Positions 37,801 to 64,000 of a stretch of DNA of 64,000 nucleotides are shown piece by piece; the first letter of the stretch is position 1; every line of letters begins with the position of its first letter. Under the pieces are notes generated by a model. The model was not told the DNA's origin. It ran no database searches and saw only the letters and a list, made by a program, of their open reading frames with translations. Source of the stretch: Bugula neritina (lineage: Eukaryota; Animalia; Bryozoa). The position numbers and the translations under genes are program-made. The stretch covers positions 31,185,504 to 31,249,503 of the forward strand of contig OZ037765.1 in assembly GCA_964035545.1 (NCBI GenBank), given 5' to 3'.

Positions 37801-40800
37801 ACTCTCTGAAATGCTAGCTTGTCCTTTAGCTCCTTTTTCTTTCGATTTGCAGCCACCGTGCGACCAAAAGATGCATCAGCCATCATAAGATTCTTGTGTA
37901 TAACTACTTTCCAAAATTATTCCAACAGAAAATTTAAACAATAATTTGTAGAGATATTTTCAACAATCACATTTTTATATGCAATGTGATGCAACAATGA
38001 TTAAGCTTCATACATAATATTGCTTTAACAATCATTAGGCATTTAAATTCCTTTTCAGAGATTGTAATCAGTGTTTAAAAAACAAATATGAAAAATAAAA
38101 ATATAGTACAATATATCAAAAGCATTCTTTTAATTATAAGACTGAAAATTCATTAGGAATAGCATTTGCTAAAAATATTTATTTTCAAATCTTGAATAAT
38201 TTTGAGTTCCATAATAAACTACTTTATATTTCAGATAATAAAAATTGATCACCAATACTTTCAAATTCAAGTACTAAAATAGTATAACTTAAGACTAGTA
38301 TTTATCACTCAATGACCTCCACACCCTTAGATAATATTTATAAGCTTACGGGTTAGTTGGAGCCAAGGCAGGCGTAGACTGAGTAACTTGAATAGGTTTG
38401 GGCTCCGCCTTGAATTCTTGTCGTTTTCTTGTAGGTGCCTTGTAGATAATGAGTTTAGTGTCATTGTAGAGTCGACCTTGATTCACCATCCTCTCTGGTG
38501 CTGGTCTGATATCAGGATCCGGGTGTACAAATGAGGTTATGCTTTGTGGATAACATTTATCACGGTTCTACAGAATAAAAAAATATTTTTTTTAAATTAA
38601 TGGTACAATGTTGAACAAAAGTAAATACTAAATAATTGAGTGACTAAAAGGCTACACAACTGTAGCCCTGTTCTTGTCATTGTATTTGTAAGACAATAAT
38701 TGTCCAAATAAAATATCAGTTATATTTCACGAAACTAAATTAAAACTCATCTTAATCATAAAAAATACTGAATGTAGTATTGGAGTGAGGAATTTAACTC
38801 AATACCAGCTTTGTTAATAAATTGTGCAACTCAAAATACAATAATTTATGTAGGGTTAAATAACTGAAAGTCCAGCAGCATGAAATAGAAATCAGCCCTT
38901 CTGCTGATTGGAGCAAATAAAACCCTTAAGTATGCTGTTATGACTTATGTTACTTAGTTTAACAATGAAACTAGTATACTGTGAGAAATCAAAGTAAAAC
39001 AATAATCATTAGCAAATGTGTATATGACAGCTTTTTCAACAATAAACTTCCTGAAAAACTAGCTTTGAATACAATTAATAGTTCATACAAGAAAAACAAG
39101 AAAATATTATGGTGTGCAATTAATGTGAGATGAGAGATAAAAAAACTTTTTATAAATTACTGCACGGTGAAAAATAATAGACAAATTTCAATGACTGCAA
39201 TTCCCAGAATTACAGAGAACTTCTTTTAAATAGAAATTATTTTTAGCCTAATAAAAAGCAAAGTTTACCTGCTGCAGTTGTGTGTTACATTACATATAAA
39301 AGCATTCTTGAGCAATTTTGGGCATTAATTAAACTTTAAAAATTGAAGTGAAGATCAATGTAACTGTTGACTATTTTTGCATAACTGCCTGAAAAAAACT
39401 GCCTGAAAAAGTAGCTTTATTATTTTTAACTATATTATAAAGCAACACTTGTTTACTGAAATGACAACTCCAACCAACCTTCCCCAACAATACATCGAGA
39501 AAACTGTCTGTTATCAAATCAAAAATAATAAATTTAAACAAAAGCAGAAACTAAAATATAAAATTATAAAGGAGAAAATAACAACATCCAATACCTTCTT
39601 GCATATTGTACAAGTACAGTATAGAAACTACAATGCATAAGAAATATATGCATTAAACTCAATAAATAAAAAATGAAAAGCTTTACACACTAATAGAACT
39701 TGATACTCTATTGATACTCAATATTTAAAAGCTTATGTTAGGAATCACTACAAGCATAATTGCTTAAAAACTACATTGACTGTAACTATAATAATTCTAA
39801 AAGCTCCAGTTTTGAATTAAACAGTAGTTTATTGCCTACGCCCTACAGCAACATAAAAAGGAAAGATGAAAACATTTAGAAGAACTCTGAAGAGATATGG
39901 GAATGAACAGAATATTAGTTAGTACGTATATAGTACTGTGTATGACATACCACACGGCTGATGGGTAATGTCTTAGCCTTAGGTATCTCTTTAGAATAGT
40001 ATTTAAGGTGCATCACAGGTGTGTAGCTGTCCACCTCATCCACTTGTTCGGGGAGGGCTGGCATACTAGCCGTGGTCTGGAAAAGAACAGAAAGGAGGTC
40101 AGGCTATATTTTACCACAAAAACGTGAAATAAATATTTATATAATAATATATCAGCTTAGTGGTGATGAAAATCTAAAGATTTTAGGATGAAGAAAGTTT
40201 CAACAATTGATAGCCAGCATTAATTGGTTTTTATGAAGTTTATGCCAATTTCATATTCTTTTATTCTTATAAAACTCGAACGAATTTATAGTCGCCAACA
40301 TTGTGAGAAACCTTCATGGAAAGAACTTTTATGATTAAATACCCTTTATAACATCACCAATGGCCTTTAATAGGAGTCGAACACTGATTATATGTTTACC
40401 AAGTCAGTGCTCTGCTAACTAGACCATGATGCTCCCTATTTATTTTGCTCTTGTATAGATTGTCAAAAATTTAACATAAAACTGCCCTATGAATATGATA
40501 AACAAGATTCAAGGCTACAATGAATATTTAATAGAAAATCAGCTAAATTATGTGTTATTTAAACAATGAGTTATAGTAAAGTTACTAACAAGTATAGTAA
40601 CAACGTACGGTAACAGGCTGCCGTGATGACAATCCAGATCTGGCAACAGTCTTAGCAACTGATGAAAAGTCCCTTTTGGCTAAAAATATTTAATGTAAAT
40701 ATTTATTTATGATTTTAGGATCAAACAAATGCCGTTGAATCAGTTCGATAATTAGCAATTAATTTCCATTTGAATACTATTTTTTAAGATCAAATACATA

Positions 40801-46800: not shown

Positions 46801-49078
46801 TATCTAGTATATTGATAAACCTCTTGTATCTAATGTATTATTAAACCAGCCTACATACATCTAATCTATTAGACTAAGCTGTATATAATCTATTATTAGA
46901 CTAACCTGTATCTAATTTATTATTAGACTAACTTGTATCCAATCTATTATTAGACTAACTTGTATCCAATCTATTATTAGACTAACTTGTATCCAATCTA
47001 TTATTAGACTAACCTGTATATAATATATTATTAGACTAACATGCATCCAGTCTATTATTAGACTAACCTGTATCTAATCTATTATTAGACTAACCTGTAT
47101 CCAATCTATTATTAGATTCGGCTGTTTGCAGACGGCTTATATCAGCAGCAGGGAAGCTGCTCAGCACTGACTTGTTATTTCTCATATCTGAATATCTGTT
47201 ACCAAAATCAACTTCTGAGCCGACGCCATCTTCATTCTCATCCTAAACATATTATATAAGAAATAGTAGAGAATAAAACACATATATGCAAGCAGAAAGT
47301 GGTGAGCTGAAACTAGAGGTATTTAAGCTTTACAGGTGGAAGAATATAACAGTTTCAGTAGAGCCTACATGTACAGAATGATGAAATGTGTTAACTCTCC
47401 ATCAGCTGATCATTGACATAGAGTTAGTTGATGGCTGCATGACATTTTAGTTGTTTTAAATCCCACATGTTCACCGACTGTTTCGTATGCAAAGTAATGA
47501 CAGAATTTTATGGTTAGATCCATATTTTCATATGTTTGAAGTAACCTTGTGTCTATTATTTCAATGTAAATTAAATAATAACAAATTGTTACATTTCCGC
47601 TGGTTTTTGAAATGTTTTTTCTATATGCCAATCTCTATTTTTTAAAGTCAATTTTAATTAAACTTTAAAAATTTTTAAGGCTATTCTCAAAGATTGTCTA
47701 AATTCTCATGTCTGTAATACAGTTAATGTATTGCATTAGTTGGCATAAAATTGAAATTTAAACATTATATTACACTCTTACAAGTAAAGAAGCCCATTTA
47801 TTGCATAACAACCTGCTGCAAGTAACCCTATTACAAACTCAACTCAGCTACAACCAACTCAAATTAAACCATCAAAGTTTGAAATTTTTACACTAGTTAA
47901 TAACTTGTATAGGTTGAAGTTATAGGGCACAGGGACTTTATTAAGATTTAAAAAGTAGTCTAGATAGCACTAAGTATGCTAACATATGAATAACTAAGCG
48001 CATGAGGTTTTGCTATAAGATGCAAATATTTTTTAATGAAATGCATGGGTCAGGAGATTGAAAAGTTTATGACTGAGACATCAGCTAAAGACTCTCCTTT
48101 GCGTGAGAGTGGTTTAGTCTGCAGTACTTACCTTGCGTGCAGGTGAGTGCTGAATGATAATCTGCTCAAGTCTATTCTCTAACCACTGAACCCGCTTTCT
48201 TCTTTTGTTAATCAGTTGAGACTCTGAACCTGTTTCCACTGACTTTAGCAAATCATTCCTTGCATAAGACAACTCCTTGTTTATCTTACCACATATCTAC
48301 AATACATGTAAAATGATAATAGACAGACTAACACTACATACCTGTTTGAAGCATGGCATACTACAGTTATTTGGCAAACTAACTGAATTCATACTTCAGA
48401 TTATAATATAATTTAAAGTATGAATTCATTTAGTTTGCCAAATAACTGTAAATTTCTATGATGCAAACAGGTATGTAGTGTTAGTCATGAAAACAAGTTT
48501 ATATTATGTACTGCAACTTTGGAGAATTTATACGTATTATGCTTAAATAATATATTATGTTATTTAAACACAATATGTATAAATTCTCCAAAGTTGCAGT
48601 ACATACATACATGATAAATATTGCCTTGTCATTGTATAAAACCAGAATTAATAAGCTTAAGATCTTAACTTCTAAAAATTTAACTTTTCTTTCATAGTAA
48701 ATTAGCTTTTGCCAATACAACATAGTAAACATAAACTTGCAGTATAATTGAACACAAGTTGCAACTTCTTATTGTTACCTGTAAAATGATAATCATTTCA
48801 TCAGCTTTAACCTTGAGCTCTTTTACTCTAGAGGTATGAAACTGCAAAGAATCTGGCTTTGCAGTTTTCAGATCAGATAAAGCTTGCCGTAGTTGTTCTT
48901 GAAACATCACAACATTCTTGCGTTGTTCCGCCATATATAAATCTGAGCGATAGCATATCTTTACTCGTTCCTTCAGTGGTTTCCCACTGGAAATTGGTGC
49001 TGGTTTTTCCGTCAAACCCTCAATGCTGGGCAATCGGTTGTACCTGCTGATGGCAACTTTAGACGGTGAAGACGGCAT
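31886..49078 (-). CDS. HEATR9: HEAT-repeat protein, HEATR9-like, with long low-complexity N-terminal extension (~20 exons)
   Basis: Exons traced from MPSSPSKVAISRYNRLPSI (49078) to ...LKTLESLST* (31886). The C-terminal half (LKWDRVQYLFQTSLKS..ERQDAAKQLGVL..VFQALK..VQYEAAKALIRLGCLED, VRLEAAHTLGVL, LGIRQTKVLRVL) resembles remembered vertebrate HEATR9. Some middle exon boundaries are uncertain. Confidence 0.68.
36322..36334. promoter_or_regulatory. RFX X-box-like palindrome
   Basis: GTTGCCATGCAAC versus consensus GTTGCCATGGCAAC. Confidence 0.35.
36348..37886 (-). CDS. 512-aa basic, Cys-cluster orphan ORF nested in a HEATR9-like intron (alternative first exon or nested gene)
   Basis: 1.5-kb uninterrupted ORF in AT-rich DNA; the flanking host exons join in phase without it; a phase-compatible GT lies at its end. 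Confidence 0.75.
   Translation of the reverse strand: MMADASFGRTVAANRKKKELKDKLAFQRVPLLDFEIMNDYKDKNISHNKLNRGLTKLLNICVVCGAAKRPCEVGCPIQYKKSVEDLDSKDLLNSKWHLPSSLFGMLYATQFNTSTVPQFEDEFHKNELRFATSITKIRERSDYNFQVINQWKKDRSSITPVPSLEYYKKVKGISFTKAKDKPFKLKALAHSVGYMLPWISENYEKVKNKCSDKVCKVRRTPPHLLPMGEWSRMKRRLEKVASRIQRDSIFKRKKSMGAPNDVMVCQHATEAMERSLSITKALASQPVRPKKKLSVSWSGHNNSKFYENRTPKNPSFLKRISLPPMPSHSKSISKSGIEAHKERSKSVLFSEPLVEGLAQKALLPKLPPVIILVTEAVGSNVANYNLGNKKSLKQKSRKIIEIKDGDFCESCHSIPCLQLKACKFVKWKSASQAVKSHAAARAKPFEYILGIERVSILYTRIGRVERNKTLGFALKLHPKYCKGNGKCNACKEDLFYSRKMAVHQHRLMEHSR
40360..40430 (-). mobile_element. Possible decayed tRNA-derived SINE head
   Basis: Minus strand TGGTCTAGTTAG (A-box-like) ... GTTCGACTCC (B-box-like) at tRNA-like spacing; no full cloverleaf. 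Confidence 0.3.
45281..45400. repeat. 20-bp minisatellite spanning a HEATR9-like 3' splice site
   Basis: CATCATCACAAATCTGATGA-type units; the first unit overlaps the acceptor ATCAG|GTTGATGATG. Confidence 0.8.
46810..47116. repeat. 27-bp minisatellite (~10 copies) built from a HEATR9-like exon end plus 5' splice site
   Basis: Minus-strand unit TCTAATAATAGATTGGATACAG|GTTAG; the first unit is coding (SNNRLDT). Confidence 0.92.
48326..48486. repeat. 161-bp near-perfect palindrome (foldback/MITE-like)
   Basis: GACTAACACTACATACCTGTTTG...CAAACAGGTATGTAGTGTTAGTC, with inner arms ACAGTTATTTGGCAAACTAA/TTAGTTTGCCAAATAACTGT. Confidence 0.85.
48505..48605. repeat. 101-bp near-perfect palindrome
   Basis: TATGTACTGCAACTTTGGAGAATTTATAC...GTATAAATTCTCCAAAGTTGCAGTACATA. 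Confidence 0.85.
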
Positions 49079-50208
49079 CTCCCTCGTATATTCGTAAATT
49101 TATTTAAAATTTGCACCAGTCTTTTAGACCTTCTTGATGTTGGAGCAACTTTTTATTACATTCTCTTTTCTAAAATAGATAATTAACTTCAACATTTTTA
49201 TAATTAGGATTTTTCTGGGGAGTTCATTCTCATCTTACATTGTCCACTATTACGTGTTGCTAAAATTTACAAGATTACTTGAGGTATGTTGTTAGTAACA
49301 TAATACAACTTTTAATGTGCAATGAGCATTTCCATAATGTGTCTAGCTAGTAACTATAAAACATAACCAATATCAAAACCAAATGTTGATTTACTTGAAT
49401 TGAAATCAACACAGAAATATTTTTAGATGCTTACAGCTATTGCATAGAACAACTAGTAGTAGTACAACTAGTTGTCTATTTCAATAGATGACTAGAACTA
49501 GCAAGTTAGTAAGTTATTTACTTACTTTTTGTACATAATCATAATGCAACTTTAAACTATAGGAATAAGGCAGCTCTTATAAGTCAGATAAAAATGAAGT
49601 AGTTGATACTGGATGCAACATTTCAGGTCAAACTTTTGGCTAGAAGTAGAATATAAAAATAATCAACTATAAAATCACTACTGACAGTGACACTGCTTTA
49701 ACATTTGAAGTTAAACTGAAGTGAATGGTCTAGACAGCTAGTGTAGCTTTAAATTTTAAAAACATTGCTCAGTATGACTTTTTTTATAAAAGTTTTCAAA
49801 CCTCAGTTTGAAGCAGAAAGTCTAAACAAACAAAAAATAATTGAATTTTTCATACAACTTTCAAGATACATTTATGATTTATAGAGTTAAATAAAACATC
49901 ACCAGTTTAAGTATAACCTTAACGCCTGGTTAAATAAAGCAAACGCAGTTTTATATTGATGAATACAGAATAGCCACACTTATAAGTCAAAGTGCTAGTA
50001 GTAGTACTACCTTATACTTTATAGTTATATTTATATTAGGTTCAACTCAGAACCAGTATGAAGTTAAACACTAATAGTAATAAAATGATAATATTATAAT
50101 CATCAACTTTATTATTGATAATTTAAATTATTATTATTAATATTATAGTAATCACTAATTAATAAAACCATCGGCATCATATTCATATTGATTAAAGCCT
50201 AAAGGGTA
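49029..50208. repeat. Segmental duplication, copy A (HEATR9-like start codon and upstream region)
   Basis: Colinear direct similarity, with indels, to 62790-64000. Confidence 0.93.
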
Positions 50209-50712
50209 ATATAAATAATAATATGCATCAGCATGGCCAAGTGATTATCATTATGAACTTGTACTAAATTAAGATATTAAAATCAAAATGAAAATAGCAG
50301 ACAATAAAAATTATACGATAAAGTTTTATAACTGTGGTCTATGAGCACAAAAATCTTAATCATCGAAGTAATATAAATCTTGAGTGTAAATCGTCTAGTA
50401 GTGATACTAAATCTAATACTAATAGTAATAGAAATAGTATTAAACTATTCAATAAATTTTTAATGTGCAAGAACCAATATCTAAAATTAGCTGAATTTAG
50501 CCAAGTGGTTACCGCGGTGATTTGCCTGTGCTCAACAAGCTCTCGGTAAAATAGTTACAAATACGTTATGAAAAGTAGTATTCTTAATTGTTGCAAACTT
50601 CAAACCTCAGTCTAAAACTTGCTCTCTAGCCCTTCTTTAACTGAATAAATAGGCTGATTCAAGAGACCTCATAGGTAGAACGGTATATTACCCAAAACAC
50701 CTTTTGTATCCG

Positions 50713-50739
50713 CCTTTTCTAGCGTAGTGCGAGGTAAGT
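50713..50739 (+). promoter_or_regulatory. Candidate 5'TOP/TCT-type start, short non-coding exon 1 and donor
   Basis: CCTTTTCTAGCGTAGTGCGAG|GTAAGT: pyrimidine start plus a perfect donor at 50734, as in ribosomal-protein and snoRNA-host genes, directly upstream of the RPS15A-derived array. Confidence 0.6.
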
Positions 50740-50957
50740 GATGCATCACATGTTCTCCTTCATTTAAAAATCGTTCGACATCTAAATTGTAGGAGTATCT
50801 CGACTGTTGTGCGTTATAGCTATGCATACTTGTGAAAAGTAAAAATGTCTATAATGATTAGTTGTTATTTTGTTTTCATCAGATGCTGTGAAAATCCTTT
50901 CTATCCAGTTAACATACTTTTTACGATGTTGATTTAAACAATAATATCATTTGTATT

Positions 50958-51064
50958 AGTGTACATCATGGACGCAAATTATATCCTCATCATGGTTCAT
51001 GCTATATCAGAACTAATCATTATATAGTAGTCATCTGTTGATCACTCATAGTATGTTCAGAATT
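50958..51064 (+). ncRNA. Possible second H/ACA-like RNA (degenerate; only its 3' hairpin recurs in later units)
   Basis: Short hairpin, H-box ATATCA (51004-51009), then a hairpin GAAC...GTTC ending AGA-NNN; target not identified. Confidence 0.3.
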
Positions 51065-51077
51065 TGAATTTTAAGTA

Positions 51078-51211
51078 GCTCTTCCTTCGAAAGCAACTGC
51101 TGCATTTTCCAATGTATCAGTCCGTCAAGTAAGGGTAGATTAAAATGCTAGGAAAGCATAGTGGGTTTTTGTGCTCTTACTGCCATAGACTCAATCCACC
51201 AAGCTACACTC
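51078..51211 (+). ncRNA. SNORA21: H/ACA snoRNA, SNORA21/ACA21 family, copy 1 (divergent)
   Basis: Hairpin, H box AGATTA (51137), hairpin, ACA (51206). Pocket 1 (AAAGC + CGTC) pairs 28S GACG-U-N-GCUUU; pocket 2 (TAGTGGGT + CAATCCA) pairs around 28S UGGAUUG-U-UCACCCACUA. Both 3' pocket strands begin 14 nt before their box. Confidence 0.85.
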
Positions 51212-51548
51212 TTTAATTGATCACATTTGCGTGTGAGTCAAGATTGTTTCATTTTCTGCAATACTGCCAGTTTCCACTTGGATTATTATTATTGTTGGTT
51301 ATTTTATTGTAGTTATGTTGTCATAACAATTTCCCAAAGAACAATGGACCACGAATAAGCTAAAGGAAAACATCTTGGTGGAAAATAATAGTTGCTGATC
51401 ACAGATCTGGAAAGATTGTTGTCAACTTGACTGGGCGACTAAACAAGGTACTATCCTAATCATCATCATGTGCTAAATCAGAACTATTCATTATATAGTG
51501 GTTATCTGTTGATCACTCATAGTATGTTCAGAATTTGAATTTTAAGTA

Positions 51549-51678
51549 GCTCTTCCTTCAAAAGCAACTGCTGCATTTTCCAATGCAGTGGTTCGTCAAG
51601 TAAGGGTAGATTAAAATTGCTAGGACAGTGTGTTTTTGTGCTCTTACTGCCATAAACTCAATCCACCAAGCTACACTC
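51549..51678 (+). ncRNA. SNORA21: SNORA21-family H/ACA snoRNA, copy 2
   Basis: 12-bp upper stem AACTGCTGCATT/AATGCAGTGGTT, CAAAAGC + CGTCAAG pocket, AGATTA, CAATCCA, ACA. Confidence 0.8.
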
Positions 51679-52013
51679 CTTAATAGATTACATAAATTTG
51701 CTCGTGAGTCGAGATTGTTTCATTTTCTGCAATACTGCAAGTTTCCACTTGAATTATTATTGTTGGTTATTTTATTGTAGTTATGTTGTCATGACAACTT
51801 CCCAAGAAATAATGAACCACGAAGAAGCTAAAGGAAAACATCTTGGTGGAAAATAATAGTTGATGATCACAGATGTGGAAAGATTGTTGTCAACTTGACT
51901 AGGCGACTAAACAAGGTACTATCCTAATCATCATGTGCTAAATCAGAACTATTCATTATATAGTGGTTATCTGTTGATCACTCATAGTATGTTCAGAATT
52001 TGAATTTTAAGTA

Positions 52014-52143
52014 GCTCTTCCTTCAAAAGCAACTGCTGCATTTTCCAATGCAGTGGTTCGTCAAGTAAGGATAGATTAAAATTGCTAGGACAGTGTGTTT
52101 TTGTGCTCTTACTGCCATAAACTCAATCCACCAAGCTACACTC
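52014..52143 (+). ncRNA. SNORA21: SNORA21-family H/ACA snoRNA, copy 3
   Basis: As copy 2. Confidence 0.8.
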
Positions 52144-52478
52144 CTTAATAGATTGCATAAATTTGCTTGTGAGTTGAGATTGTTTCATTTTTTGCAATAC
52201 TGCAAGTTTCCACTTGAATTATTATTGTTAGTTGTTTTATTGTAGTTATGTTGTCATGACAACTTCCCAAGAAATAATGAACCACGAAGAAGCTAAAGGA
52301 AAACATCTTGGTGGAAAATAATAGTTGATGATCACAGATGTGGAAAGATTGTTGTCAACTTGACTAGGCGACTAAACAAGGTACTATCCTAATCATCATG
52401 TGCTAAATCAGAACTATTCATTATATAGTGGTTATCTGTTGATCACTCATAGTATGTTCAGAATTTGAATTTTAAGTA

Positions 52479-52608
52479 GCTCTTCCTTCAAAAGCAACTG
52501 CTGCATTTTCCAATGCAGTGGTTCGTCAAGTAAGGGTAGATTAAAATTGCTAGGACAGTGTGTTTTTGTGCTCTTACTGCCATAAACTCAATCCACCAAG
52601 CTACACTC
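52479..52608 (+). ncRNA. SNORA21: SNORA21-family H/ACA snoRNA, copy 4
   Basis: As copy 2. Confidence 0.8.
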
Positions 52609-52943
52609 CTTAATAGATTACATAAATTTGCTCGTGAGTCGAGATTGTTTCATTTTCTGCAATACTGCAAGTTTCCACTTGAATTATTATTGTTAGTTGT
52701 TTTATTGTAGTTATGTTGTCATGACAACTTCCCAAGAAATAATGAACCACGAATAAGCTAAAGGAAAACATCTTGGTGGAAAATAATAGTTGATGATCAC
52801 AGATCTGGAAAGATTGTTGTCAACTTGACTAGGCGACTAAACAAGGTACTATCCTAATCATCATGTGCTAAATCAGAACTATTCATTATATAGTGGTTAT
52901 CTGTTGATCACTCATAGTATGTTCAGAATTTGAATTTTAAGTA

Positions 52944-53071
52944 GCTCTGCCTTCAAAAGCAACTGCTGCATTTTCCAATGCAGTGGTTCGTCAAGTAAGG
53001 ATAGATAAATTGCTAGTACAGTGTGTTTTTGTGCTCTTACTGCCATAAACTCAATCCACCAAGCTACACTC
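52944..53071 (+). ncRNA. SNORA21: SNORA21-family H/ACA snoRNA, copy 5
   Basis: As copy 2; a small deletion converts the H box to AGATAA, still ANANNA. Confidence 0.75.
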
Positions 53072-53409
53072 CTTAATAGATTGCATAAATTTGCTTGTGA
53101 GTTGAGATTGTTTCATTTTTTGCAATACTGCAAGTTTCCACTTGAATTATTATTGTTAGTTGTTTTATTGTAGTTATGTTGTCATGACAACTTCCCAAGA
53201 AATAATGAACCACGAAGAAGCTAAAGGAAAACATCTTGGTGGAAAATAATAGTTGATGATCACAGATGTGGAAAGATTGTTGTCAACTTGACTAGGCGAC
53301 TAAACAAGGTACTATCCTAATCATCATCATGTGCTAAATCAGAACTATTCATTATATAGTGGTTATCTGTTGATCACTCATAGTATGTTCAGAATTTGAA
53401 TTTTAAGTA

Positions 53410-53539
53410 GCTCTTCCTTCAAAAGCAACTGCTGCATTTTCCAATGCAGTGGTTCGTCAAGTAAGGGTAGATTAAAATTGCTAGGACAGTGTGTTTTTGT
53501 GCTCTTACTGCCATAAACTCAATCCACCAAGCTACACTC
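53410..53539 (+). ncRNA. SNORA21: SNORA21-family H/ACA snoRNA, copy 6
   Basis: As copy 2. Confidence 0.8.
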
Positions 53540-53877
53540 CTTAATAGATTACATAAATTTGCTCGTGAGTCGAGATTGTTTCATTTTCTGCAATACTGCA
53601 AGTTTCCACTTGAATTATTATTATTGTTGGTTATTTTATTGTAGTTATGTTGTCATGACAACTTCCCAAGAAATAATGAACCACGAAGAAGCTAAAGGAA
53701 AACATCTTGGTGGAAAATAATAGTTGATGATCACAGATGTGGAAAGATTGTTGTCAACTTGACTAGGCGACTAAACAAGGTACTATCCTAATCATCATGT
53801 GCTAAATCAGAACTATTCATTATATAGTGGTTATCTGTTGATCACTCATAGTATGTTCAGAATTTGAATTTTAAGTA

Positions 53878-54007
53878 GCTCTTCCTTCAAAAGCAACTGC
53901 TGCATTTTCCAATGCAGTGGTTCGTCAAGTAAGGATAGATTAAAATTGCTAGGACAGTGTGTTTTTGTGCTCTTACTGCCATAAACTCAATCCACCAAGC
54001 TACACTC
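53878..54007 (+). ncRNA. SNORA21: SNORA21-family H/ACA snoRNA, copy 7
   Basis: As copy 2. Confidence 0.8.
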
Positions 54008-54206
54008 CTTAATAGATTACATAAATTTGCTTGTGAGTTGAGATTGTTTCATTTTCTGCAATACTGCCAGTTTCCACTTGGATTATTATTGTTAGTTATT
54101 TTATTGTAGTTATGTTGTCATGACAACTTCTCAAGGAATAATGGACCATGAAGAAGCTAAAAGAAAACATCTTGGTGGAAAAATATTAGGATTTTTCTTT
54201 TGAAAC

Positions 54207-54212
54207 AATAAA
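54207..54212 (+). terminator. Polyadenylation signal of the RPS15A-derived unit
   Basis: AATAAA 3 nt after the stop codon. Confidence 0.65.
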
Positions 54213-56221
54213 ATGGTGAACTAACAGAAAATCTTGTTATTAATTCTATTCTTTATTTTTTTGCTGTGACAAGTCATGCATGTTGGTGGTCAGTGATTAA
54301 TAAAAAGTATAAAAAGCACGAAACTACATAATTTAAAATTACATAAAACTAGGATTTTGGCAGAAATAAGCTAAGACTGGCTTAGTCTAACTTTATTATA
54401 TCTGTATAGTCCGAATATAACTCCTATTGCCAGAGCAAGTCCAGCTGCATGAGAAGTATGAAAGACACTTTTAGTAGCTATAATAGTAGTAATACTTAGT
54501 AATAGGTTCGTGTGTGTGTACTCGAAGCAAATCTTGCAGATGCTCATTGGTGAGTTAGCTGTGTTCTATTATTTTTTGATATGGTCCATCATATAGAATA
54601 TGCACTCGCATTTATAAACATAACCAAATATCCTCAGTGCTGCAGTTCAGCTATGTGTAGGGTACTTTTCATAGTTATAACTGGCGAAGTGTAAACGCTA
54701 ACTGTAGTTAAAGCAACATCGCAACTATAGTTGTGATGCTGCTATTAGTTTCAGTAGTGTTGTCCCAGTTGGATGCTTTTTATTTATTTTGGTACAATGT
54801 ATATATTTAATGTGCAATTCATTCGAATATTATTGAATTATATGTATATTTAGGTAAACTTGGATCAGCTGTTGGCTACTTAGCACATAAAAAATCCTTT
54901 AATCTGTATTAACTTATTAAGGGCGCCCTTGTAATATTTTTATATTTTATACTTCTCGTTGGAAAAGAATATTTCATTAAAAATAATGTCTATTATTAAC
55001 TTATTACTGTGTTTTACCCCACACAAATCTGTGAAAAGTGGGCTATTATTTCAGATACTTTATATTAGCTATTCTAGCTATTAGCTATTTAGCAATCGAT
55101 ACAACAGTTATATACATTATTATGGTACCAAAATTAAAAAATAGCGTCTAATTGAGATGAAATTGTTTCAGCAACTATACACCGGCCAGAATCTTCCAGT
55201 GAGTCATGTTCATGATTGGCCAGTATTGCTTAGTACACGCATTCTGCGAATGATTAAGAAACCAATGAAATTTTAAGAATTGCTAGTGATTGGCTGAGAG
55301 CCTGATTAAAACAGTAGGAGCACCTGAAGTGGCCCAATGGCCACCATTTGCTCATGCCTGCAGTAGACAAGGCAAGAAAAATATGAATTTTATAAAATTT
55401 AAAAATTTGAAGTAATTATAAAGTAATTGTAAAATTCAATTACATTAGCAATGTAATTAATTACAATTGCATTTTTATACATCAATTACAAATTACATTC
55501 AATTACTTGAAAAAATGTAATTAACTACAACCAGGGATGTAGTGGAAAAAATATTCTAGGCCAGACTCTCAGGCCGAGGGTCCCTCCCCTCCCCCCCCTC
55601 AAAGCACTTCTGATGCAAATTTATGCAATTTAAAGCCATTGTGAATCATAATTCTTCTGAAAAAATCTGTGTTGAAATGTGCACCTCGCTATTATTTTCA
55701 TACCATATACCCAGCTACATGAAGACTGGGCATTGCTGCAAACTATATAAATATTCAGTCTTGTCCCATACCTGTTGACTGTAATGTAATGTAATGTAGT
55801 CTTACTCAACTGCAGTTAGGTTTGTTCTGACACTAAGTCCAACCTGTACAGAAAAAATGCTGAATATCTCAAAAAGATGGAAGGATAGAGGCAGGTAACA
55901 AGTGCTCTCCAAATGCAACCTGATTACTTTAAATAACTATAATACACTGCCGTGCACAGAAAAAGAATAATAGATCAGAACGGAGGAAGATTGCTAATCA
56001 GAAAATGTGTGTTGGTTATTTATAAAGAGCAATTTGAATTGATAACTCATTGGCAAGCAGAAATTATTTGAAGTTTGTTAAAGTACTATAAGTCTAATCC
56101 ATAAGGTGATACCGCCACACCTTCTTACACACAATAAAGCACACCCAAGAAGAGTATGTTAACTTGGTTTTAAAATAAAACCCATGAGCTTCCACTAGAT
56201 ACATCAAAGAAATATACCCCA

Positions 56222-56733
56222 TGTCACAAAACTGTTGGTAGCAGTGTGACGAGTTCGAAAAGTCTGGTAGTCAGAAGTATAGAGACAAGTAGCATACAGC
56301 TTGCTAATCCAGTTGAGAGTAAATAGAGTAGACTTTATTTCTTCAGTAAGATATGCACAGATGAACTTATAAGAGTGAACTGATTCGTAAACACAACTGC
56401 CTCAGTATTTATAGTAAACAAAACACTCTAGAACATTCTCAAGCATTCCAGTAGAGAAGATTCTAGTAGAAAACATTCCCCACATGCCAATACTATTTAT
56501 AGAAAATCAAAACAAAACAAAACATTGGAATTTCCATGGTTATTTCGCAATTATTGCGCAATACCTTGTTTACATTGCTGGGCAGTAGTTAACATGACTA
56601 ACCAAAACAGTAACAATGAACAATGACCCATCTCTTTGATTAGCCTAGAATATTTATGAACATTCCTGTATAATCATTAGGAAAAACCCGGTAAGTCTAT
56701 TTATAGGTATATGTACACTCAGAATTTGTGACA
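56222..56733 (-). repeat. 3' LTR of copy 2
   Basis: Reverse complement of the copy-1 LTR; one visible difference from its partner (56644 C vs 61714 T). Confidence 0.97.
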
Positions 56734-56779
56734 ACCCCCCATTCTAAGAGAAATTATCTTGATCATTTCTCCTAACTAC

Positions 56780-59700
56780 TTAAAATTCTGAGTCAATTCG
56801 GCTTAGATAATCGGCTCCAACATTGTCTTTTCCTTTGATTGACTCCACCTTGATCCTGAAGTTCTGTAAATACATAGCCCATCTCATCACTCTGCTGTTC
56901 TCAAATTTGGCCTGGTTGATGTACACCAGCGGTTGGTGATCAGTCTGCAGCACGAACTCCACACCATATAAATATTGTAGATATTTCTTGACCGCCCATA
57001 CCACAGCTAAGCATTCCTTCTCTATGGCTGAGTAGTTTCTCTCTCGGTCTAGTAGTTTCCTACTTGCGTAACTCACAGGGAACAGCTTTCCATCCTGAGG
57101 CTGCATCAGCACTGCCCCTAGCCCAACATCTGATGCATCAGTCCTTAGCACAAACGGTTTGTGTACATCTGGTAATTTCAAAATTGGCGCACTTGTCAGC
57201 ATTGTTTTTAAGCTGGTGTACGCTTTCTCTTGTGGTTCCTGCCATTTGACTTTCTTTGGTTCTCCCTTCTTTGTTAAATCTGTTAATGGACTCGCTATAG
57301 TTGAATAATGAGGAATATATTCTCTGTAGTAACTAGTAAGTCCAATGAACGATCTCACTTGCGTCTTATTGGTTGGCCTTGGCGCAGCCCTAATTTTCTC
57401 AATGTTGTCATCCATTGGTTTAATTTCACCCCTGTAAAGTTTATGTCCGATGAACTCCGTGTTTGTTCCTCCTACTCTACATTTACTTGGTCTAACGGTA
57501 AGTCCAGCTGTGGCAAGCCGGCTGAAAACTTCTGTTAGCGTTTTAACGTGTTCTTCCCAACTTTCCGTGTGCACTAGAATGTCATCAATGTAGTTGTCCA
57601 CTCCTTTCAGATTTACAAAAAGTTTTCTCAACCCTCTCACCAGTGTCGCTCCAGAGTTAACCATCCCAAATGGCATCTTGATGAATTCATAATGTCCATC
57701 GGGTGTCACAAATGCAGTTTTAGGAATATCTTCTTTCTTCACTGGTATTTGCCAGTATCCCTTGGATAAATCAAGTTTGGTAAAGTATTTATCTTTACTG
57801 AGCTTTCTGAAAACGTCATCTATTTTCACCATTGGTTCAGGATCGAATACTGTGACTCGGTTTAGTTTGCGATAGTCTATACAAATCCTGTTGCTTCCAT
57901 CTGGCTTCTTTACTATCACCGTTGGTGAGGCGTAGGGAGAGGTAGATGGCCGAATAACACCCATCTTCAACATATCCTCGATGTCCGCCTTGAGAGTTTC
58001 TCTTACCCTGTAGGGCAATCCATATGGTTTGGATTTCACTGGCTCATCAGTCGTGAGCTCGATAGAATGTTCTATTCCCGTTGCATTTCCTGGCAAGTCA
58101 CTGAAGATACCTTCAAACTTTCTTAGTAACTCCTCCAGCCGTCTTCTTTGCTGATTCTCCAGCTCTTCACCCAGAATGACATCTTTGCTTGTTTCTGTCT
58201 GCTGTTTCTTGCCGTACAGGCCCAACAAATCATCTTGGCCTTCTTCTCTTTCCTCATCATGATCAATAACTCCAGTACCAGCAGCATCTAAAGTCATCAC
58301 AGCTCCAACAGTCATAGGGTCGGTAGGCGCCTCCCGCTCAAAATATTTCTTCAGCATGTTGGCATGGTATGTTCTCCTCTTGCCTCTAATGTTGATAATG
58401 TAGTCATTCAGTCTGACTTTCTCCTCAATATTGAATGGTCCTTGCCAATGCATCAGCAATTTATTTCCATCCGTAGGTAGAAGAATGAGCACTTTGTCAC
58501 CAGGTCTGAAGTCTCTCTGCTTAGCTTTCTTGTCAAAATAGTGTTTGTATCTTTTTTGACTGTCTTTTAGCGAAGCTAGTGCCATTTCCATCATGTCATC
58601 TAAACGCTCTCTCAATTCAAAAACATGTTGATAGCAGGTCTTGACTTCATCGGCGGTGTCTTCTTTTGTCCAAAGTTGTCGCAGGATGTACATTGGTCCA
58701 CGTACAGTTCTTCCATAGAGTAACTCGAATGGGGCGAAGCCTGTTGATTCCTGTGGGACTTCTCTATATGCAAATAGAGCCGCATTGATGAACCGATGCC
58801 ACTGTCTTGGCTCTTTAGCACACAACTTTTTTAACATACTCTTGAGGGTTCCGTTGAACTTTTCCACAAGTCCATTGGCCATTGCATGGTATGGTGAGGT
58901 AGGAAGTTGTCGCATGTCAAGTAATCTGGTAAACTCTTTCATGTAATCCGAGATGAATTGAGTTCCTTGGTCGCTTATCACCTCCTCTGGTATCCCAACA
59001 CGACTGTATATGTCAAGCAGCGCTTCAGCTACAGTAGCTGAGTCAATATTCTTCAATGGTGTAGCTTCAGGGTATCTTGTAGCATAGTCAACTAAAGTTA
59101 GGATGTAGCGGTGTCCTTTCTCACTTGGAGGGTTAATTGGTCCGATTAGGTCTATTGCACATCTCTTGAATGGGGTGTCAATTAGTGGAGTTTCCTGTAC
59201 TGGAACTTTCATGACTGAGCCTTTTTTCACCGTCTTCTGGCAAATGTCACATGATTGACAGAAACGTACGACATCTCCGTTTAGTCCTGGCCAGAAGAAG
59301 TTGGAAAGCACTCTATCAGTGGTTTTCTTTACTCCTAGGTGTCCGCTCATTATGCAGTCATGAGCTTTCTGTAGAACTTCCTTCCTCAGTGAACTGGGTA
59401 CCATGAGTTGTTTAACAGGTTTTACACTGACAGACTTCGAGTCGGTGTACTCACGGTACAGAATCTTATTCCTCACCACAAACCTAGTGGTGCATCCCTT
59501 TTTCTCCTTCACTTCTTTTGCATCGAAGAAACGTTCCAATGTGGGGTCATCCCTCTGCAGTCTGGCTATCTCATCTTTCCCTATACTTAATGGGTTAGCA
59601 TTTGAATCAATCATCAGTGGTTTGTCCCCTGACTTTTCCTTGACAGCTTGAGCTCTTGTGGTTACGGCGCAGTCCTTCCAGTTTTCCAGCGGCTGGTCAG

Positions 59701-61195
59701 CTGATCTTGCTCCATCCACATTCCCAATAAGCAGGTCACAAATCGTCTTGTCCATTACTGCAGCTTTGACGACACCATTGTAAAAGGGTGAGCGCACTGA
59801 GATAAGTGCCCACTGAGCCTCCCTAACACTTGCATCAGCCATATTCAGATAAACTGATTCTCCAGTTAAGTGTTGAGGTTGCACATACTTTGCATTGACT
59901 ACAATGCAACCGCAGCCGGTGTCGCGCATTACAGTAGCTCGTTGGCCATTAACTTCCGCATCAAATATCGCTGTGCCCCCATCTTTGAATTTAGGTCCAT
60001 TTTTGCAGACAGCAGCGTTGACAAACTTTTTACCATTGACTGTGATTTCCGTAGGTTCTTCCACTTTAGATGAGATTCCTGGATCTGTGACCACAGTCTT
60101 TTTCTGAGTAGTCGCTATTGCAGCAGCAGCATGCACTGACCTTCCACCATACTTTCTGCAGTCTGAAGTATTGTGGTTGTTCATCTTGCAATGTGAACAG
60201 TACTTCTTCCCTCGCCGTGGGCAGTTACGAGCAATGTGTGACTTATCTTTGCAGATAAAGCATGCCCCATCGCTTTTACTTCCTTGTTCAGCATTCATGC
60301 TACCGGTGGGTGTGTTTTCCATCCTTTTTGTATTAGTTTTCTTAGTCTTTGCTAGTTTTCTTCCACGGGCGTGCAAAAACAGTGATGCTGCATCACACAT
60401 ATCTTCACTGCTGTTGTAGGAACTTTGCTTTAAATGCACAGCTAGGTCGTCTGGGCATGATGATATAAATTGTTCAGTCGCCACTAGTTTGGCTATGTCC
60501 ATGCCCCCTGAAAGCTCCACCCACTTGTGCACGTAAGTTTCTATCCTAGTGAATAGTTGGGCAGGAGTTTCATCCTCGTAAGCTTCTGCCTCTCTGAGCT
60601 TTTTTCTGTAGCCCTCTTGAGTCAAGTTAAAGCGCTCCAACAAGGCTTCTTTGACTTTTTTATAATCTCTACGATCGGTAGGTGACAACCGGATGTAAGC
60701 TTCTGTTGCTGTACCCCTTAGGTACTGACTGAGATGGTAGGGCCAATCTCCCTTGTCCCAGTTACATCCTTCGGCAACCCACTCGAACCGCTCTAAATAG
60801 CTATCCATTTCATCCACCTTCTCATCAAAGAATGGTATCTTTGGTTTTGGTTTGTTAGCTATTTCTAACCTGGTGCTCTCATGTCTTGAGTGCTCCAAAC
60901 TTGTGTTAGCTTTCAGCTTTTCCATATCTAATTCATGTTGTTGTCTTCTCTCTTCTGCCTCCTGGTCAGCTTTTATCTTCATCTCCATTAAGGCTTTCTC
61001 ATTTTCTTGCTTGATCCTTTCCGCCTCACGCTCTAATCTACGCTCCTCTCGGTCCTTTTCTTTTTCCTCTCGGTCCTTTTCTTTTTCCTCTTGTGCAGCA
61101 ACAATGGGTAGGTTCTTTTCAACAAAAGCTACGAGCTTGTCCTCCACCAATCCAAGGTCTTTACCCATCTGTGTCACTCTCTCCAACAACGCCAT
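56780..61195 (-). CDS. Gag-Pol polyprotein of copy 2 (Gag-PR-IN-RT-RH)
   Basis: Same motifs as 1658-6118; differs by two in-frame repeat indels (+7, -22 aa) and about 15 substitutions. Confidence 0.98.
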   Translation of the reverse strand: MALLERVTQMGKDLGLVEDKLVAFVEKNLPIVAAQEEKEKDREEKEKDREERRLEREAERIKQENEKALMEMKIKADQEAEERRQQHELDMEKLKANTSLEHSRHESTRLEIANKPKPKIPFFDEKVDEMDSYLERFEWVAEGCNWDKGDWPYHLSQYLRGTATEAYIRLSPTDRRDYKKVKEALLERFNLTQEGYRKKLREAEAYEDETPAQLFTRIETYVHKWVELSGGMDIAKLVATEQFISSCPDDLAVHLKQSSYNSSEDMCDAASLFLHARGRKLAKTKKTNTKRMENTPTGSMNAEQGSKSDGACFICKDKSHIARNCPRRGKKYCSHCKMNNHNTSDCRKYGGRSVHAAAAIATTQKKTVVTDPGISSKVEEPTEITVNGKKFVNAAVCKNGPKFKDGGTAIFDAEVNGQRATVMRDTGCGCIVVNAKYVQPQHLTGESVYLNMADASVREAQWALISVRSPFYNGVVKAAVMDKTICDLLIGNVDGARSADQPLENWKDCAVTTRAQAVKEKSGDKPLMIDSNANPLSIGKDEIARLQRDDPTLERFFDAKEVKEKKGCTTRFVVRNKILYREYTDSKSVSVKPVKQLMVPSSLRKEVLQKAHDCIMSGHLGVKKTTDRVLSNFFWPGLNGDVVRFCQSCDICQKTVKKGSVMKVPVQETPLIDTPFKRCAIDLIGPINPPSEKGHRYILTLVDYATRYPEATPLKNIDSATVAEALLDIYSRVGIPEEVISDQGTQFISDYMKEFTRLLDMRQLPTSPYHAMANGLVEKFNGTLKSMLKKLCAKEPRQWHRFINAALFAYREVPQESTGFAPFELLYGRTVRGPMYILRQLWTKEDTADEVKTCYQHVFELRERLDDMMEMALASLKDSQKRYKHYFDKKAKQRDFRPGDKVLILLPTDGNKLLMHWQGPFNIEEKVRLNDYIINIRGKRRTYHANMLKKYFEREAPTDPMTVGAVMTLDAAGTGVIDHDEEREEGQDDLLGLYGKKQQTETSKDVILGEELENQQRRRLEELLRKFEGIFSDLPGNATGIEHSIELTTDEPVKSKPYGLPYRVRETLKADIEDMLKMGVIRPSTSPYASPTVIVKKPDGSNRICIDYRKLNRVTVFDPEPMVKIDDVFRKLSKDKYFTKLDLSKGYWQIPVKKEDIPKTAFVTPDGHYEFIKMPFGMVNSGATLVRGLRKLFVNLKGVDNYIDDILVHTESWEEHVKTLTEVFSRLATAGLTVRPSKCRVGGTNTEFIGHKLYRGEIKPMDDNIEKIRAAPRPTNKTQVRSFIGLTSYYREYIPHYSTIASPLTDLTKKGEPKKVKWQEPQEKAYTSLKTMLTSAPILKLPDVHKPFVLRTDASDVGLGAVLMQPQDGKLFPVSYASRKLLDRERNYSAIEKECLAVVWAVKKYLQYLYGVEFVLQTDHQPLVYINQAKFENSRVMRWAMYLQNFRIKVESIKGKDNVGADYLSRIDSEF

Positions 61196-61291
61196 AATGT
61201 CTCAACAACTGTTAATTAATCCTGTGTATGCTCACGTTGTAACTAATAACTTCCCTGTGTGCGACTGAGACTTCCCGGAGCAGCCCCCAAT

Positions 61292-61803
61292 TGTCACAAA
61301 ACTGTTGGTAGCAGTGTGACGAGTTCGAAAAGTCTGGTAGTCAGAAGTATAGAGACAAGTAGCATACAGCTTGCTAATCCAGTTGAGAGTAAATAGAGTA
61401 GACTTTATTTCTTCAGTAAGATATGCACAGATGAACTTATAAGAGTGAACTGATTCGTAAACACAACTGCCTCAGTATTTATAGTAAACAAAACACTCTA
61501 GAACATTCTCAAGCATTCCAGTAGAGAAGATTCTAGTAGAAAACATTCCCCACATGCCAATACTATTTATAGAAAATCAAAACAAAACAAAACATTGGAA
61601 TTTCCATGGTTATTTCGCAATTATTGCGCAATACCTTGTTTACATTGCTGGGCAGTAGTTAACATGACTAACCAAAACAGTAACAATGAACAATGACCCA
61701 TCTCTTTGATTAGTCTAGAATATTTATGAACATTCCTGTATAATCATTAGGAAAAACCCGGTAAGTCTATTTATAGGTATATGTACACTCAGAATTTGTG
61801 ACA
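61292..61803 (-). repeat. 5' LTR of copy 2
   Basis: TG...CA, followed internally by the same tRNA-Pro-like PBS. Confidence 0.97.
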
Positions 61804-62689
61804 CCCCAAAAGATCAAATTTGACAGGTTTAATATGTGTTAACCTAGAAGATGATTAAATGTAAAGCTGCAGAGGTTAGTACAATCAAACATAAAAGGTT
61901 ACTTATGGTGGTGTACAGTTTGCAAAACCTTATTGCATTGATAATTAACATGCAATAACCTAGGTTTTTGACCAAAATGTAGATATAGTTATACCTGTAG
62001 ACCTCAGTGATAAATTTTCATTAGCCTCTCCTACACACCTGGCACTGTTTTTTAAAGACATTTTGATTTATTTCTGGATTTCATGTTGATTTTTTCCAAA
62101 TTCCATTGCTTATTGATAAAATGCAAGTCCACACAAAATAGCTGTCACTGCCTTGCTGAGGCCACATTATTGGTATATTATAAGAATTCAGTCCCGGCAA
62201 ACAAAACTTCACATAATTGTGCTAGAATTAAAATTTAAAAACCATGTTTTAGATCTTCCTGTTCCTTAGAGCACCTGCTTTTTGAGTTTTCAATAATTTT
62301 TGCAAAGTTATAGACAAAAATCTTCTCATTTTTGGCCAGTTTTACCTGAAAAATTTATTTTTCAATCCCTGCCAAATATCTCAGCAGGAAAGCATGGTAT
62401 TCGAATAAAACAAACACTGTCGGAAACCTGAGAAATTTATGCATGGCAACCTTTTTGATCTTTTCAATAGCCTTCATAGATTTTCTACAAGTTAGTGATA
62501 TGTACACCGAAAATAAAAGATTTTTTCAATAGTAATCACCAATGCACAGCACTTCGTGCTTCAGTGAACACGTAGAGATGAGAAGTTGGAATATTGATAG
62601 CTGCATATTATTCATAGTATAATCCCAGGCTAAACAATCACAAGTAGGCAACACGCATGCCACCCACATAGCTTCAACATTACAAGAAC

Positions 62690-62839
62690 TTAAATTAGAT
62701 CGTGAGCGAAATTGATGATATTCCCAGTGAGGATGCCAATCAGCAAAGTGTACCAGGTAAATACTTCACCATTATAAATTATATAAATCGGCAATCGGTT
62801 GTACCTGTCGATGGCAACTTTAGACGGTGAAGACGGCAT
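62690..62839 (-). pseudogene. Truncated duplicate of the HEATR9-like start fused to unrelated sequence
   Basis: MPSSPSKVAIDRYNRLP (vs MPSSPSKVAISRYNRLP), then homology ends and the frame closes after 49 codons. Confidence 0.7.
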
Positions 62840-64000
62840 CTCCCTCGTAAATTCGTAACTTTATTTCAAATTTGTACCAGTCCTTTATACTTTCTTTATG
62901 TTGGAGCAACTTTTTATTACATTCTCTTTTTTCTAAAATAGATAATTGAATTCCAAATTTTTATAATAGACCCTTTTTCAGAAGTCCATGATATACCCTT
63001 TACAAATAAGAGTTGTGTCCTCCCAAATAGGGTTATTCTGGTGAGTTATTTCTCATCTTACATTGTCCACTATTATCATTATGTGTTGCTAAAGTTACAA
63101 AATTACTTAAGGGATGTTGTTAGTAACATAATACAACTTTTAATGTGTGATGAGCATTTCCATGATATGTCTAGCCAGTAACAATGAAACATAACCAATA
63201 CCAAAACCAAATGCCTAAATTTAGTTTATATTTACTTGAATTGAAATCAACACAGAAATATTTGTAGATGCTTACAGCTATTGCATAGAACAACTAGTAG
63301 TAGTACAACTAGTTGCCTATATCAATAGACGACTAGAACTAGCAAGTTAGTAAGTTATTTACTTACTTTTTGTACATAATCATAATGCAACTTTAAACTA
63401 TAGGAATAAGGCAGCTCTTATAAGTCAGATAAAAATGAAGTAGTTGATACTGGATGCAACATTTCAGGTCAAACTTTTGAGCTAGAAGTAGAATATAAAA
63501 ATGATAAACTATAAAATCTCTACCGACTGTGATACTGCCTGAACTTTTGAAGTTAAACTGAATAGTCTAGACAGCTAGTGTAGCTTTAAATTTTAAAAAC
63601 ATTGCTCAGTATGACTTTTTTTTATAAAACTAAAAGTCTTCAGACCTCAGTTTAAAGCAGGAAGTCTAAACAAAAACAATAATTGAACTTTTCATACAAC
63701 CTACAAGATACATTTATAGAGTTAAATAAAACAAACGCAGTTTTATAATGATGAATAGAGAATAGTCATACTCATAAGTCATAGTGCTAGCAGTAGTACG
63801 ACCTTATACTATATAGTTATATTTACTTTTAGATTAAGTTCAACTTAGAATCAGTATGACTATGAAGTTAAACACTAATAAAAATGATAACATTATGATT
63901 ATAACCATCAAGTTCAACATTAATATTGATAATTCAAATTATCATTAATATAGTAATCACTAATCAGTAATACCATCGGCATCATATTGATTAAAGGGTA
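62790..64000. repeat. Segmental duplication, copy B (runs off the window)
   Basis: Matches 49029-50208 from GGCAATCGGTTGTACCTG through ...CCATCGGCATCATATT. Confidence 0.93.

Follow-up and report, generated by a model that had tools for sequence, protein, structure and literature searches.

A 64,000-nt stretch of the Bugula neritina genome (assembly GCA_964035545.1, contig OZ037765.1, positions 31,185,504–31,249,503 of the forward strand; hereafter the window) contains, at 49029–54448, a rearranged duplicate of the RPS15A locus in which each of seven introns carries one small nucleolar RNA (snoRNA) of the box H/ACA class. As judged from its sequence, the copy is a lineage-specific tandem duplicate and an unprocessed pseudogene of RPS15A: introns and promoter are kept, coding is disabled and an intact parent lies nearby. 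A retrocopy origin was rejected on the presence of introns and promoter. By construction the locus is a multi-intron non-coding snoRNA host, plausibly a nascent one, and we withhold the status of an established host. In the reading that we favor, at a probability of about 0.55, the inherited promoter of this coding-dead duplicate would fire and its transcript would be spliced, yielding up to seven redundant guide RNAs and leaving a substrate for nonsense-mediated decay (NMD).

Tandem Repeats Finder (TRF) reports a repeat at 51000–54182 (period 465, 6.8 copies, 96%), and the seven ~465-bp units, splice sites and AATAAA motif described earlier from the letters alone (the sequence-only reading) lie where that reading had placed them. 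All features of the copy are on the plus strand. Non-coding exon 1 (50713–50733) opens, at its presumed start site, with an 8-pyrimidine run that resembles a terminal oligopyrimidine (TOP) tract and is homologous to parent exon 1; it ends at the donor GAG/GTAAGT (50733/50734; the slash marks the junction). The hybrid first intron (50734–51312) fuses parent intron 1 (to ~50982) with parent intron 3; behind these come snoRNA copy 1 and then sequence from the 3′ part of the parent's intron 4. Six internal exons follow at 51313–51447, 51781–51915, 52246–52380, 52711–52845, 53174–53308 and 53645–53779, each of 135 nt and with stops in every frame. They and the last exon open behind TTGTAG/ acceptors (n = 7), and AAG/GTACT donors (n = 6) open the introns at 51448, 51916, 52381, 52846, 53309 and 53780. 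The last exon (54110–54212) holds the exon-5 coding part of RPS15A up to a TGA at 54201–54203, then AATAAA at 54207–54212. Upstream, the duplicated region with the promoter (49029–50712) is paralogous to the sequence from 62790 onward, with ~7.5% substitutions relative to the parent; downstream, the duplicated 3′ flank (54213–54448) differs by ~4.5%, and homology stops at 54448. The internal exons had been described as scrambled, stop-containing pieces of RPS15A. Stop-containing pieces they are, and not scrambled: each is a precise chimera in which nucleotides 1–74 of exon 5 run, across a GAAATA microhomology, into the final 61 nt of exon 3.

The snoRNAs are sense-oriented and lie within canonical splice sites, 101–105 nt from the acceptor, as against 99 nt in the parent. 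A covariance model built from five non-array copies only finds nine copies in the genome, seven in the array and two in the parent, and scores the array copies at 109–124 bits, in agreement with the proposal of one H/ACA snoRNA per intron. Copy 1 (51080–51211; 108.9 bits) is the most diverged and mostly of the type of parent copy A; copy 2 (51551–51678; 121.3 bits) is a mosaic of parent copies A and B. Copies 3 to 7 follow at 52016–52143 (123.7 bits), 52481–52608 (121.3 bits), 52946–53071 (114.3 bits), 53412–53539 (121.3 bits) and 53880–54007 (123.7 bits). All seven consist of two hairpins, with box H (ANANNA) placed in the hinge between them and an ACA 3 nt from the end, and boxes, guides and splice sites are intact throughout. 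Across the five non-array copies, 14 of 29 base pairs show two-sided changes, a level that none of 500 shuffles reached and that lies far above slid controls. The same RNA occurs in RPS15A introns of relatives, located through the exon-2 peptide, whose introns are otherwise unalignable: in introns 3 and 4 of L021, in intron 4 of L026 and, as partial copies, in L028. Among these relatives the SNORA21-type RNA has thus changed its place within RPS15A from one intron to another; in L028 it apparently occupies introns 1 and 3, where contig ends cut both copies. Three matches to a 19-nt snoRNA pattern in metagenome contigs were rejected as chance.

The assignment to SNORA21 held at the level of the targets and not at that of the family model. 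The 5′ pocket pairs 6+4 with U3234 of the organism's own 28S ribosomal RNA (rRNA) and the 3′ pocket 3+7 with U3303, in both cases with the target U 14 nt from the box. These are the best or only sites among 733 U in the 28S rRNA and lie 69 nt apart; in copy 1 the 5′ pocket also has an off-site match of equal quality. Chicken ACA21 targets 28S positions 3886 and 3955, again 69 nt apart, and the second is the site of yeast snR10 (PMC2653536); the human sites have this spacing as well, the first of them being 4401. Rfam at its gathering threshold gives no match in the window, and SNORA21 (RF00412, clan CL00031) stays below it, at 15.1–18.4 bits (E ~1–4) against a gathering score of 80. On account of this sub-threshold score we file the RNA as SNORA21-type, without Rfam membership, and let its identity rest on the target test. 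Array and parent snoRNAs are, as predicted from these pairings, a SNORA21/snR10-type H/ACA guide for two 28S pseudouridines. Like SNORA21/ACA21 it is a two-hairpin guide within a ribosomal-protein intron; unlike it, its host is RPS15A rather than RPL23.

The RPS15A origin of the array, proposed from its sequence, is borne out by the parent itself. A genome search with the 5′ part of the array found one second locus only, from 0.4 kb past the window end. There lies an intact RPS15A of five exons and 130 aa, ~10 kb downstream of the array and just outside the window, with its upstream region inside (62790–64000, plus strand). In the coordinates of its contig (L010; adding 63496 gives the window position), exon 1 ends at 1050 and the other exons span 1393–1542, 1765–1844, 2330–2415 and 2712–2805; snoRNA A is at 1946–2073 in intron 3 and snoRNA B at 2485–2612 in intron 4. 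Exon 2 of the parent is unique in the genome. A genome search with PF00410 missed the intron-split RPS15A, its sole match being a foreign mitochondrial-type contig. That contig (G000:C214; L001, L012) is a scaffold of 65 kb whose AT-rich genes, some of them for ribosomal proteins, are of mitochondrial type; it is not the 15-kb bryozoan mitogenome and is probably a co-assembled protist or alga.

Coding capacity was said to be lost with the scaffold intact, and this description stands. Exon 2, with the start codon, is deleted from the copy, which has no start exon. Relative to the parent, the internal exons carry mostly amino-acid-changing and stop changes, and the splice sites are kept. In the 952-nt spliced model the first ATG opens three codons and the longest ATG-initiated open reading frame has 27 aa. 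The coding part of the last exon is identical to the parent at 94 of 94 positions (P ~0.013 at the copy's rate of change). Protein-level selection on this exon was considered and is disfavored, as no upstream in-frame start is left; recent gene conversion by the parent, which we prefer, would explain the identity most simply.

A sister lineage preserves the starting point. In its contig (L025) the upstream flank of the copy is joined to an intact RPS15A, the single gene there; the ancestral state was therefore one gene at the position of the array, and it is the upstream duplicate that decayed. Private substitutions amount to 4.6% in the copy, 3.6% in the parent and 6.1% in the sister lineage. 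Unless two already divergent alleles were joined, these figures make the duplication little younger than the split of the lineages. As read from the sequence, ~3.8 kb with the promoter and the whole gene was duplicated and the downstream copy remained coding. Its upstream counterpart lost exon 4 when the two paralogous snoRNAs recombined with each other. The array snoRNAs are mosaics of parent copies A and B, and their switch point differs between unit 1 and units 2–7, so this recombination occurred twice or was followed by conversion. The microhomology join of exon 5 to exon 3 created a self-contained exon–intron–snoRNA unit; because the chimeric exon has both an acceptor and a donor, the unit could be repeated without harm to splicing. 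Unequal crossover expanded it, giving an older unit 1 and then a two-unit block three times over. This block is proposed because units 2–6 are near-identical (0–2% different) and alternate in type, 2/4/6 versus 3/5; unit 7 is partly like them, and unit 1 is ~9% diverged from the others. Unit 6 has no substitution relative to unit 2. A further deletion, whose junction lies at ~50982, reaches from intron 1 into intron 3 and took out exon 2 and its start codon together with intron 2 and exon 3. The order of the steps after the initial duplication is not fixed.

With a ribosomal-protein promoter that was kept and is still active, all seven introns would be spliced out and each would free a SNORA21-type guide for the two pseudouridines of 28S, while NMD would degrade the spliced RNA with its many stops. 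The extra guides would most likely be redundant with the parent's two. Somewhat unlikely, by comparison, is a silent pseudogene satellite, in which an untranscribed duplicate undergoes neutral tandem turnover and its signals are intact only because little time has elapsed. This explanation has to accommodate a full 1.7-kb upstream region, TOP run and donor, all kept, and the absence of any copy with a lost box or guide; ribosomal-protein promoters are, moreover, compact and constitutive. The core promoter, exon 1 and donor (50681–50739) show no copy-private change in 59 nt, at P ~0.06 for a segment chosen after looking; this is the single hint of constraint. The substitution pattern speaks for the silent satellite. 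At low power, changes are no scarcer in the snoRNAs than in the dead exons, either in unit 1 (7/130 versus 9/134, p = 0.80) or in the unit-2 type (3/131 versus 7/134, p = 0.33), and three of nine private snoRNA changes hit invariant columns, where three to four are expected. Copy 1 carries seven private substitutions, a 5-nt insertion and an A>G wobble in the guide; copy 5 differs from copy 3 by two substitutions and a small deletion after box H, all within the snoRNA, which leaves every private change of unit 5 in its snoRNA, and one of them disrupts an invariant G–C pair. Under neutrality the chance that no GT/AG site was hit is P ~0.57: the independent lineages of units number just two or three, and intact splice dinucleotides are then expected by chance.

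Array and expression were sought in the sequencing runs found, with reads placed on 48850–51500, a segment with one array unit. Runs X8 and X9 (RNA) contain X7-like alleles and parent mRNA only; their contigs run on as parent exon 3 or exon 5 at the chimeric junction, and their share of words, 5–6%, is that predicted from parent mRNA alone. Contigs of another lineage show the parent-type 3′ half of the snoRNA at depth 17. X8/X9 contigs that match units 2–7 over 51161–51209 were rejected as array evidence: the sole site that distinguishes them from parent B is probably ancestral, because its base is common to all seven units. In DNA run X7 neither a tandem junction nor a raised depth is seen, and an indel pattern of the sister lineage recurs there; the remaining DNA runs contain only 7% of the words. 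Runs X5–X9, like L017 and L025, bear the same organism label as run X1, some even from the same study, yet differ from the assembly by ~10% in non-coding DNA. This difference fits the cryptic types S, D and N named for B. neritina (PMC11480708).

Against transcription of the array, and for a silent locus, stands that no array-specific RNA was seen. The RNA runs X8/X9, however, appear to come from another lineage, whose alleles they carry and whose DNA runs show no array, so that they say nothing either way. Across the wider promoter conservation is nothing special. The copy is ~4.6% diverged on its own branch, enough for the loss of unseen promoter elements. We nevertheless retain the transcribed, spliced and largely redundant host as the better account.

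A stronger form of that account is that the locus is live and yields seven working guides, the birth of a polycistronic non-coding host gene caught in the act, with an output uncoupled from a conserved element in parent intron 2; we hold this only tentatively, at less than even odds. The element (L010, 1543–1625) is structured, opens at the 5′ splice site, is kept in three relatives (L021, L022, L028) and shows two-sided changes in 7 of 26 predicted pairs; from its sequence it is a candidate autoregulatory element. The array copy lacks it.

The loss of this element has also to be credited to the notion of a selected "amplifier", as the sequence-only reading had called it: an array kept or expanded because this lineage would profit from more SNORA21-type guide, or from a supply that escapes RPS15A feedback. 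None of the seven snoRNAs is broken although the exons decay, the duplicate has ~80% of the age of the sister-lineage split (by the private changes above) and seems to be on both haplotypes, and guide or box positions have taken one wobble change against ~2.4 expected (P ~0.3). Selection of this kind is nonetheless improbable, and the label "amplifier" is so far unsupported. Purifying selection leaves no statistical sign, the unit lineages that are independent number just two or three, and private changes in the snoRNAs show no depletion. Two copies come from the parent in any case; in the sister lineage and in other bryozoans, one or two copies are seen and suffice. Transcription of the array would itself have to be granted. 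As far as the sequences tell, the array snoRNA changes look neutral, and selection is undetected so far.

An assembly artefact, whether a collapsed or over-expanded repeat or misjoined haplotypes, is very improbable, given that the units carry patterned variants, that contigs from run X1 cross both the deletion junction (depth 132, single-copy) and the unit-to-unit junction (depth 481, or 3.6× against 4.0–5.1× predicted from the assembly), that the snoRNA bins reach 9–10× single-copy depth for nine assembled copies, and that the 3.2-kb array is far shorter than the 12–20 kb HiFi fragments (PMC11480708), even though X1, the sole run holding the array, is probably the source run and not independent. 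Its depth equals the 132-fold HiFi coverage of tzBugNeri2.1 (PMC11480708). From the full junction depth and the small differences from the assembly, the array is probably on both haplotypes of the source colony. The reality of the array, as first described, is in this way supported.

Array copy and parent are separated by ~1 kb with no other match and by a spacer of mobile DNA (55520–62737), a multi-copy 1.6-kb repeat split by a 5.6-kb long terminal repeat (LTR) retrotransposon at 56217–61807. The ~1.6-kb repeat family has at least 40 copies at 86–94% identity; its two parts here, 55520–56216 and 61808–62737, flank the LTR element. The same retrotransposon occurs twice in the window, at 1050–6679 (plus strand) and 56217–61807 (minus strand). 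The two are 97.9% identical, with LTRs >99% identical, and each has a single frame of 1471–1486 aa with a weak SCAN match and with integrase before reverse transcriptase and RNase H, an order that we take to be Gmr1-like. Elsewhere in the window, a 512-aa open frame at 36348–37886 (minus strand) matches nothing in Pfam; its one homologue, at 96% identity, is in the sister lineage. Adjacent palindromic stretches of 161 and 101 bp at 48326–48605, 87–91% self-complementary and also present in the sister lineage, are possibly a miniature inverted-repeat element.

A 5′ TOP and degradation by NMD are features of non-coding snoRNA host genes, and the likeness of their 5′ TOP to that of ribosomal-protein genes suggests an origin from them. 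The array resembles the hosts UHG/SNHG1, GAS5, U17HG and Drosophila Uhg in having short exons rich in stops, a single snoRNA in each intron and no protein (PMC2653536); its presumed start is TOP-like. It differs in that its exons are still recognizable RPS15A pieces, the parent is adjacent, one guide family is present seven times and the locus is young and lineage-specific. The SNORD115/SNORD116 clusters of the Prader-Willi region likewise consist of tandem exon–intron units, typically with one snoRNA per intron, and change in copy number through unequal crossover (PMC3845636; 10.1101/476010); those are C/D box RNAs, largely orphan, imprinted, brain-expressed and in tens to hundreds of copies, whereas the array holds seven H/ACA rRNA guides and derives from a ribosomal-protein duplicate. 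Intragenic duplication of snoRNAs is common and is the chief way in which they expand (PMC2653536), and ribosomal-protein pseudogenes that carry snoRNAs are known (PMC1687206). Unlike type-3 snoRTs, the array is a DNA-level duplicate with promoter and introns, in which a whole exon plus intron was amplified. Long non-coding RNAs that arose from protein-coding genes have in common with it the non-coding turn with promoter and splice sites kept (Hezroni et al., 2017, PMC5577775); that work covers loss of the ancestral gene, names pseudogenisation after duplication as a related path, difficult to quantify, and does not mention snoRNAs.

Within animal evolution, snoRNA host genes of the non-coding kind are regarded as young (PMC7719101). 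Their exons have usually changed so far that their source can no longer be told, and the unusual part here is that the ribosomal-protein origin is still readable. The intermediate is legible: the parent lies 10 kb away, the sister lineage retains the ancestral single-copy state and each rearrangement can be mapped. A limited literature search found no documented case of a ribosomal-protein duplicate that became a multi-snoRNA host. If silent, the locus would be an ordinary pseudogene repeat; if transcribed, it would mean that the step from a duplicated ribosomal-protein gene to a host of several snoRNAs can be a direct one.

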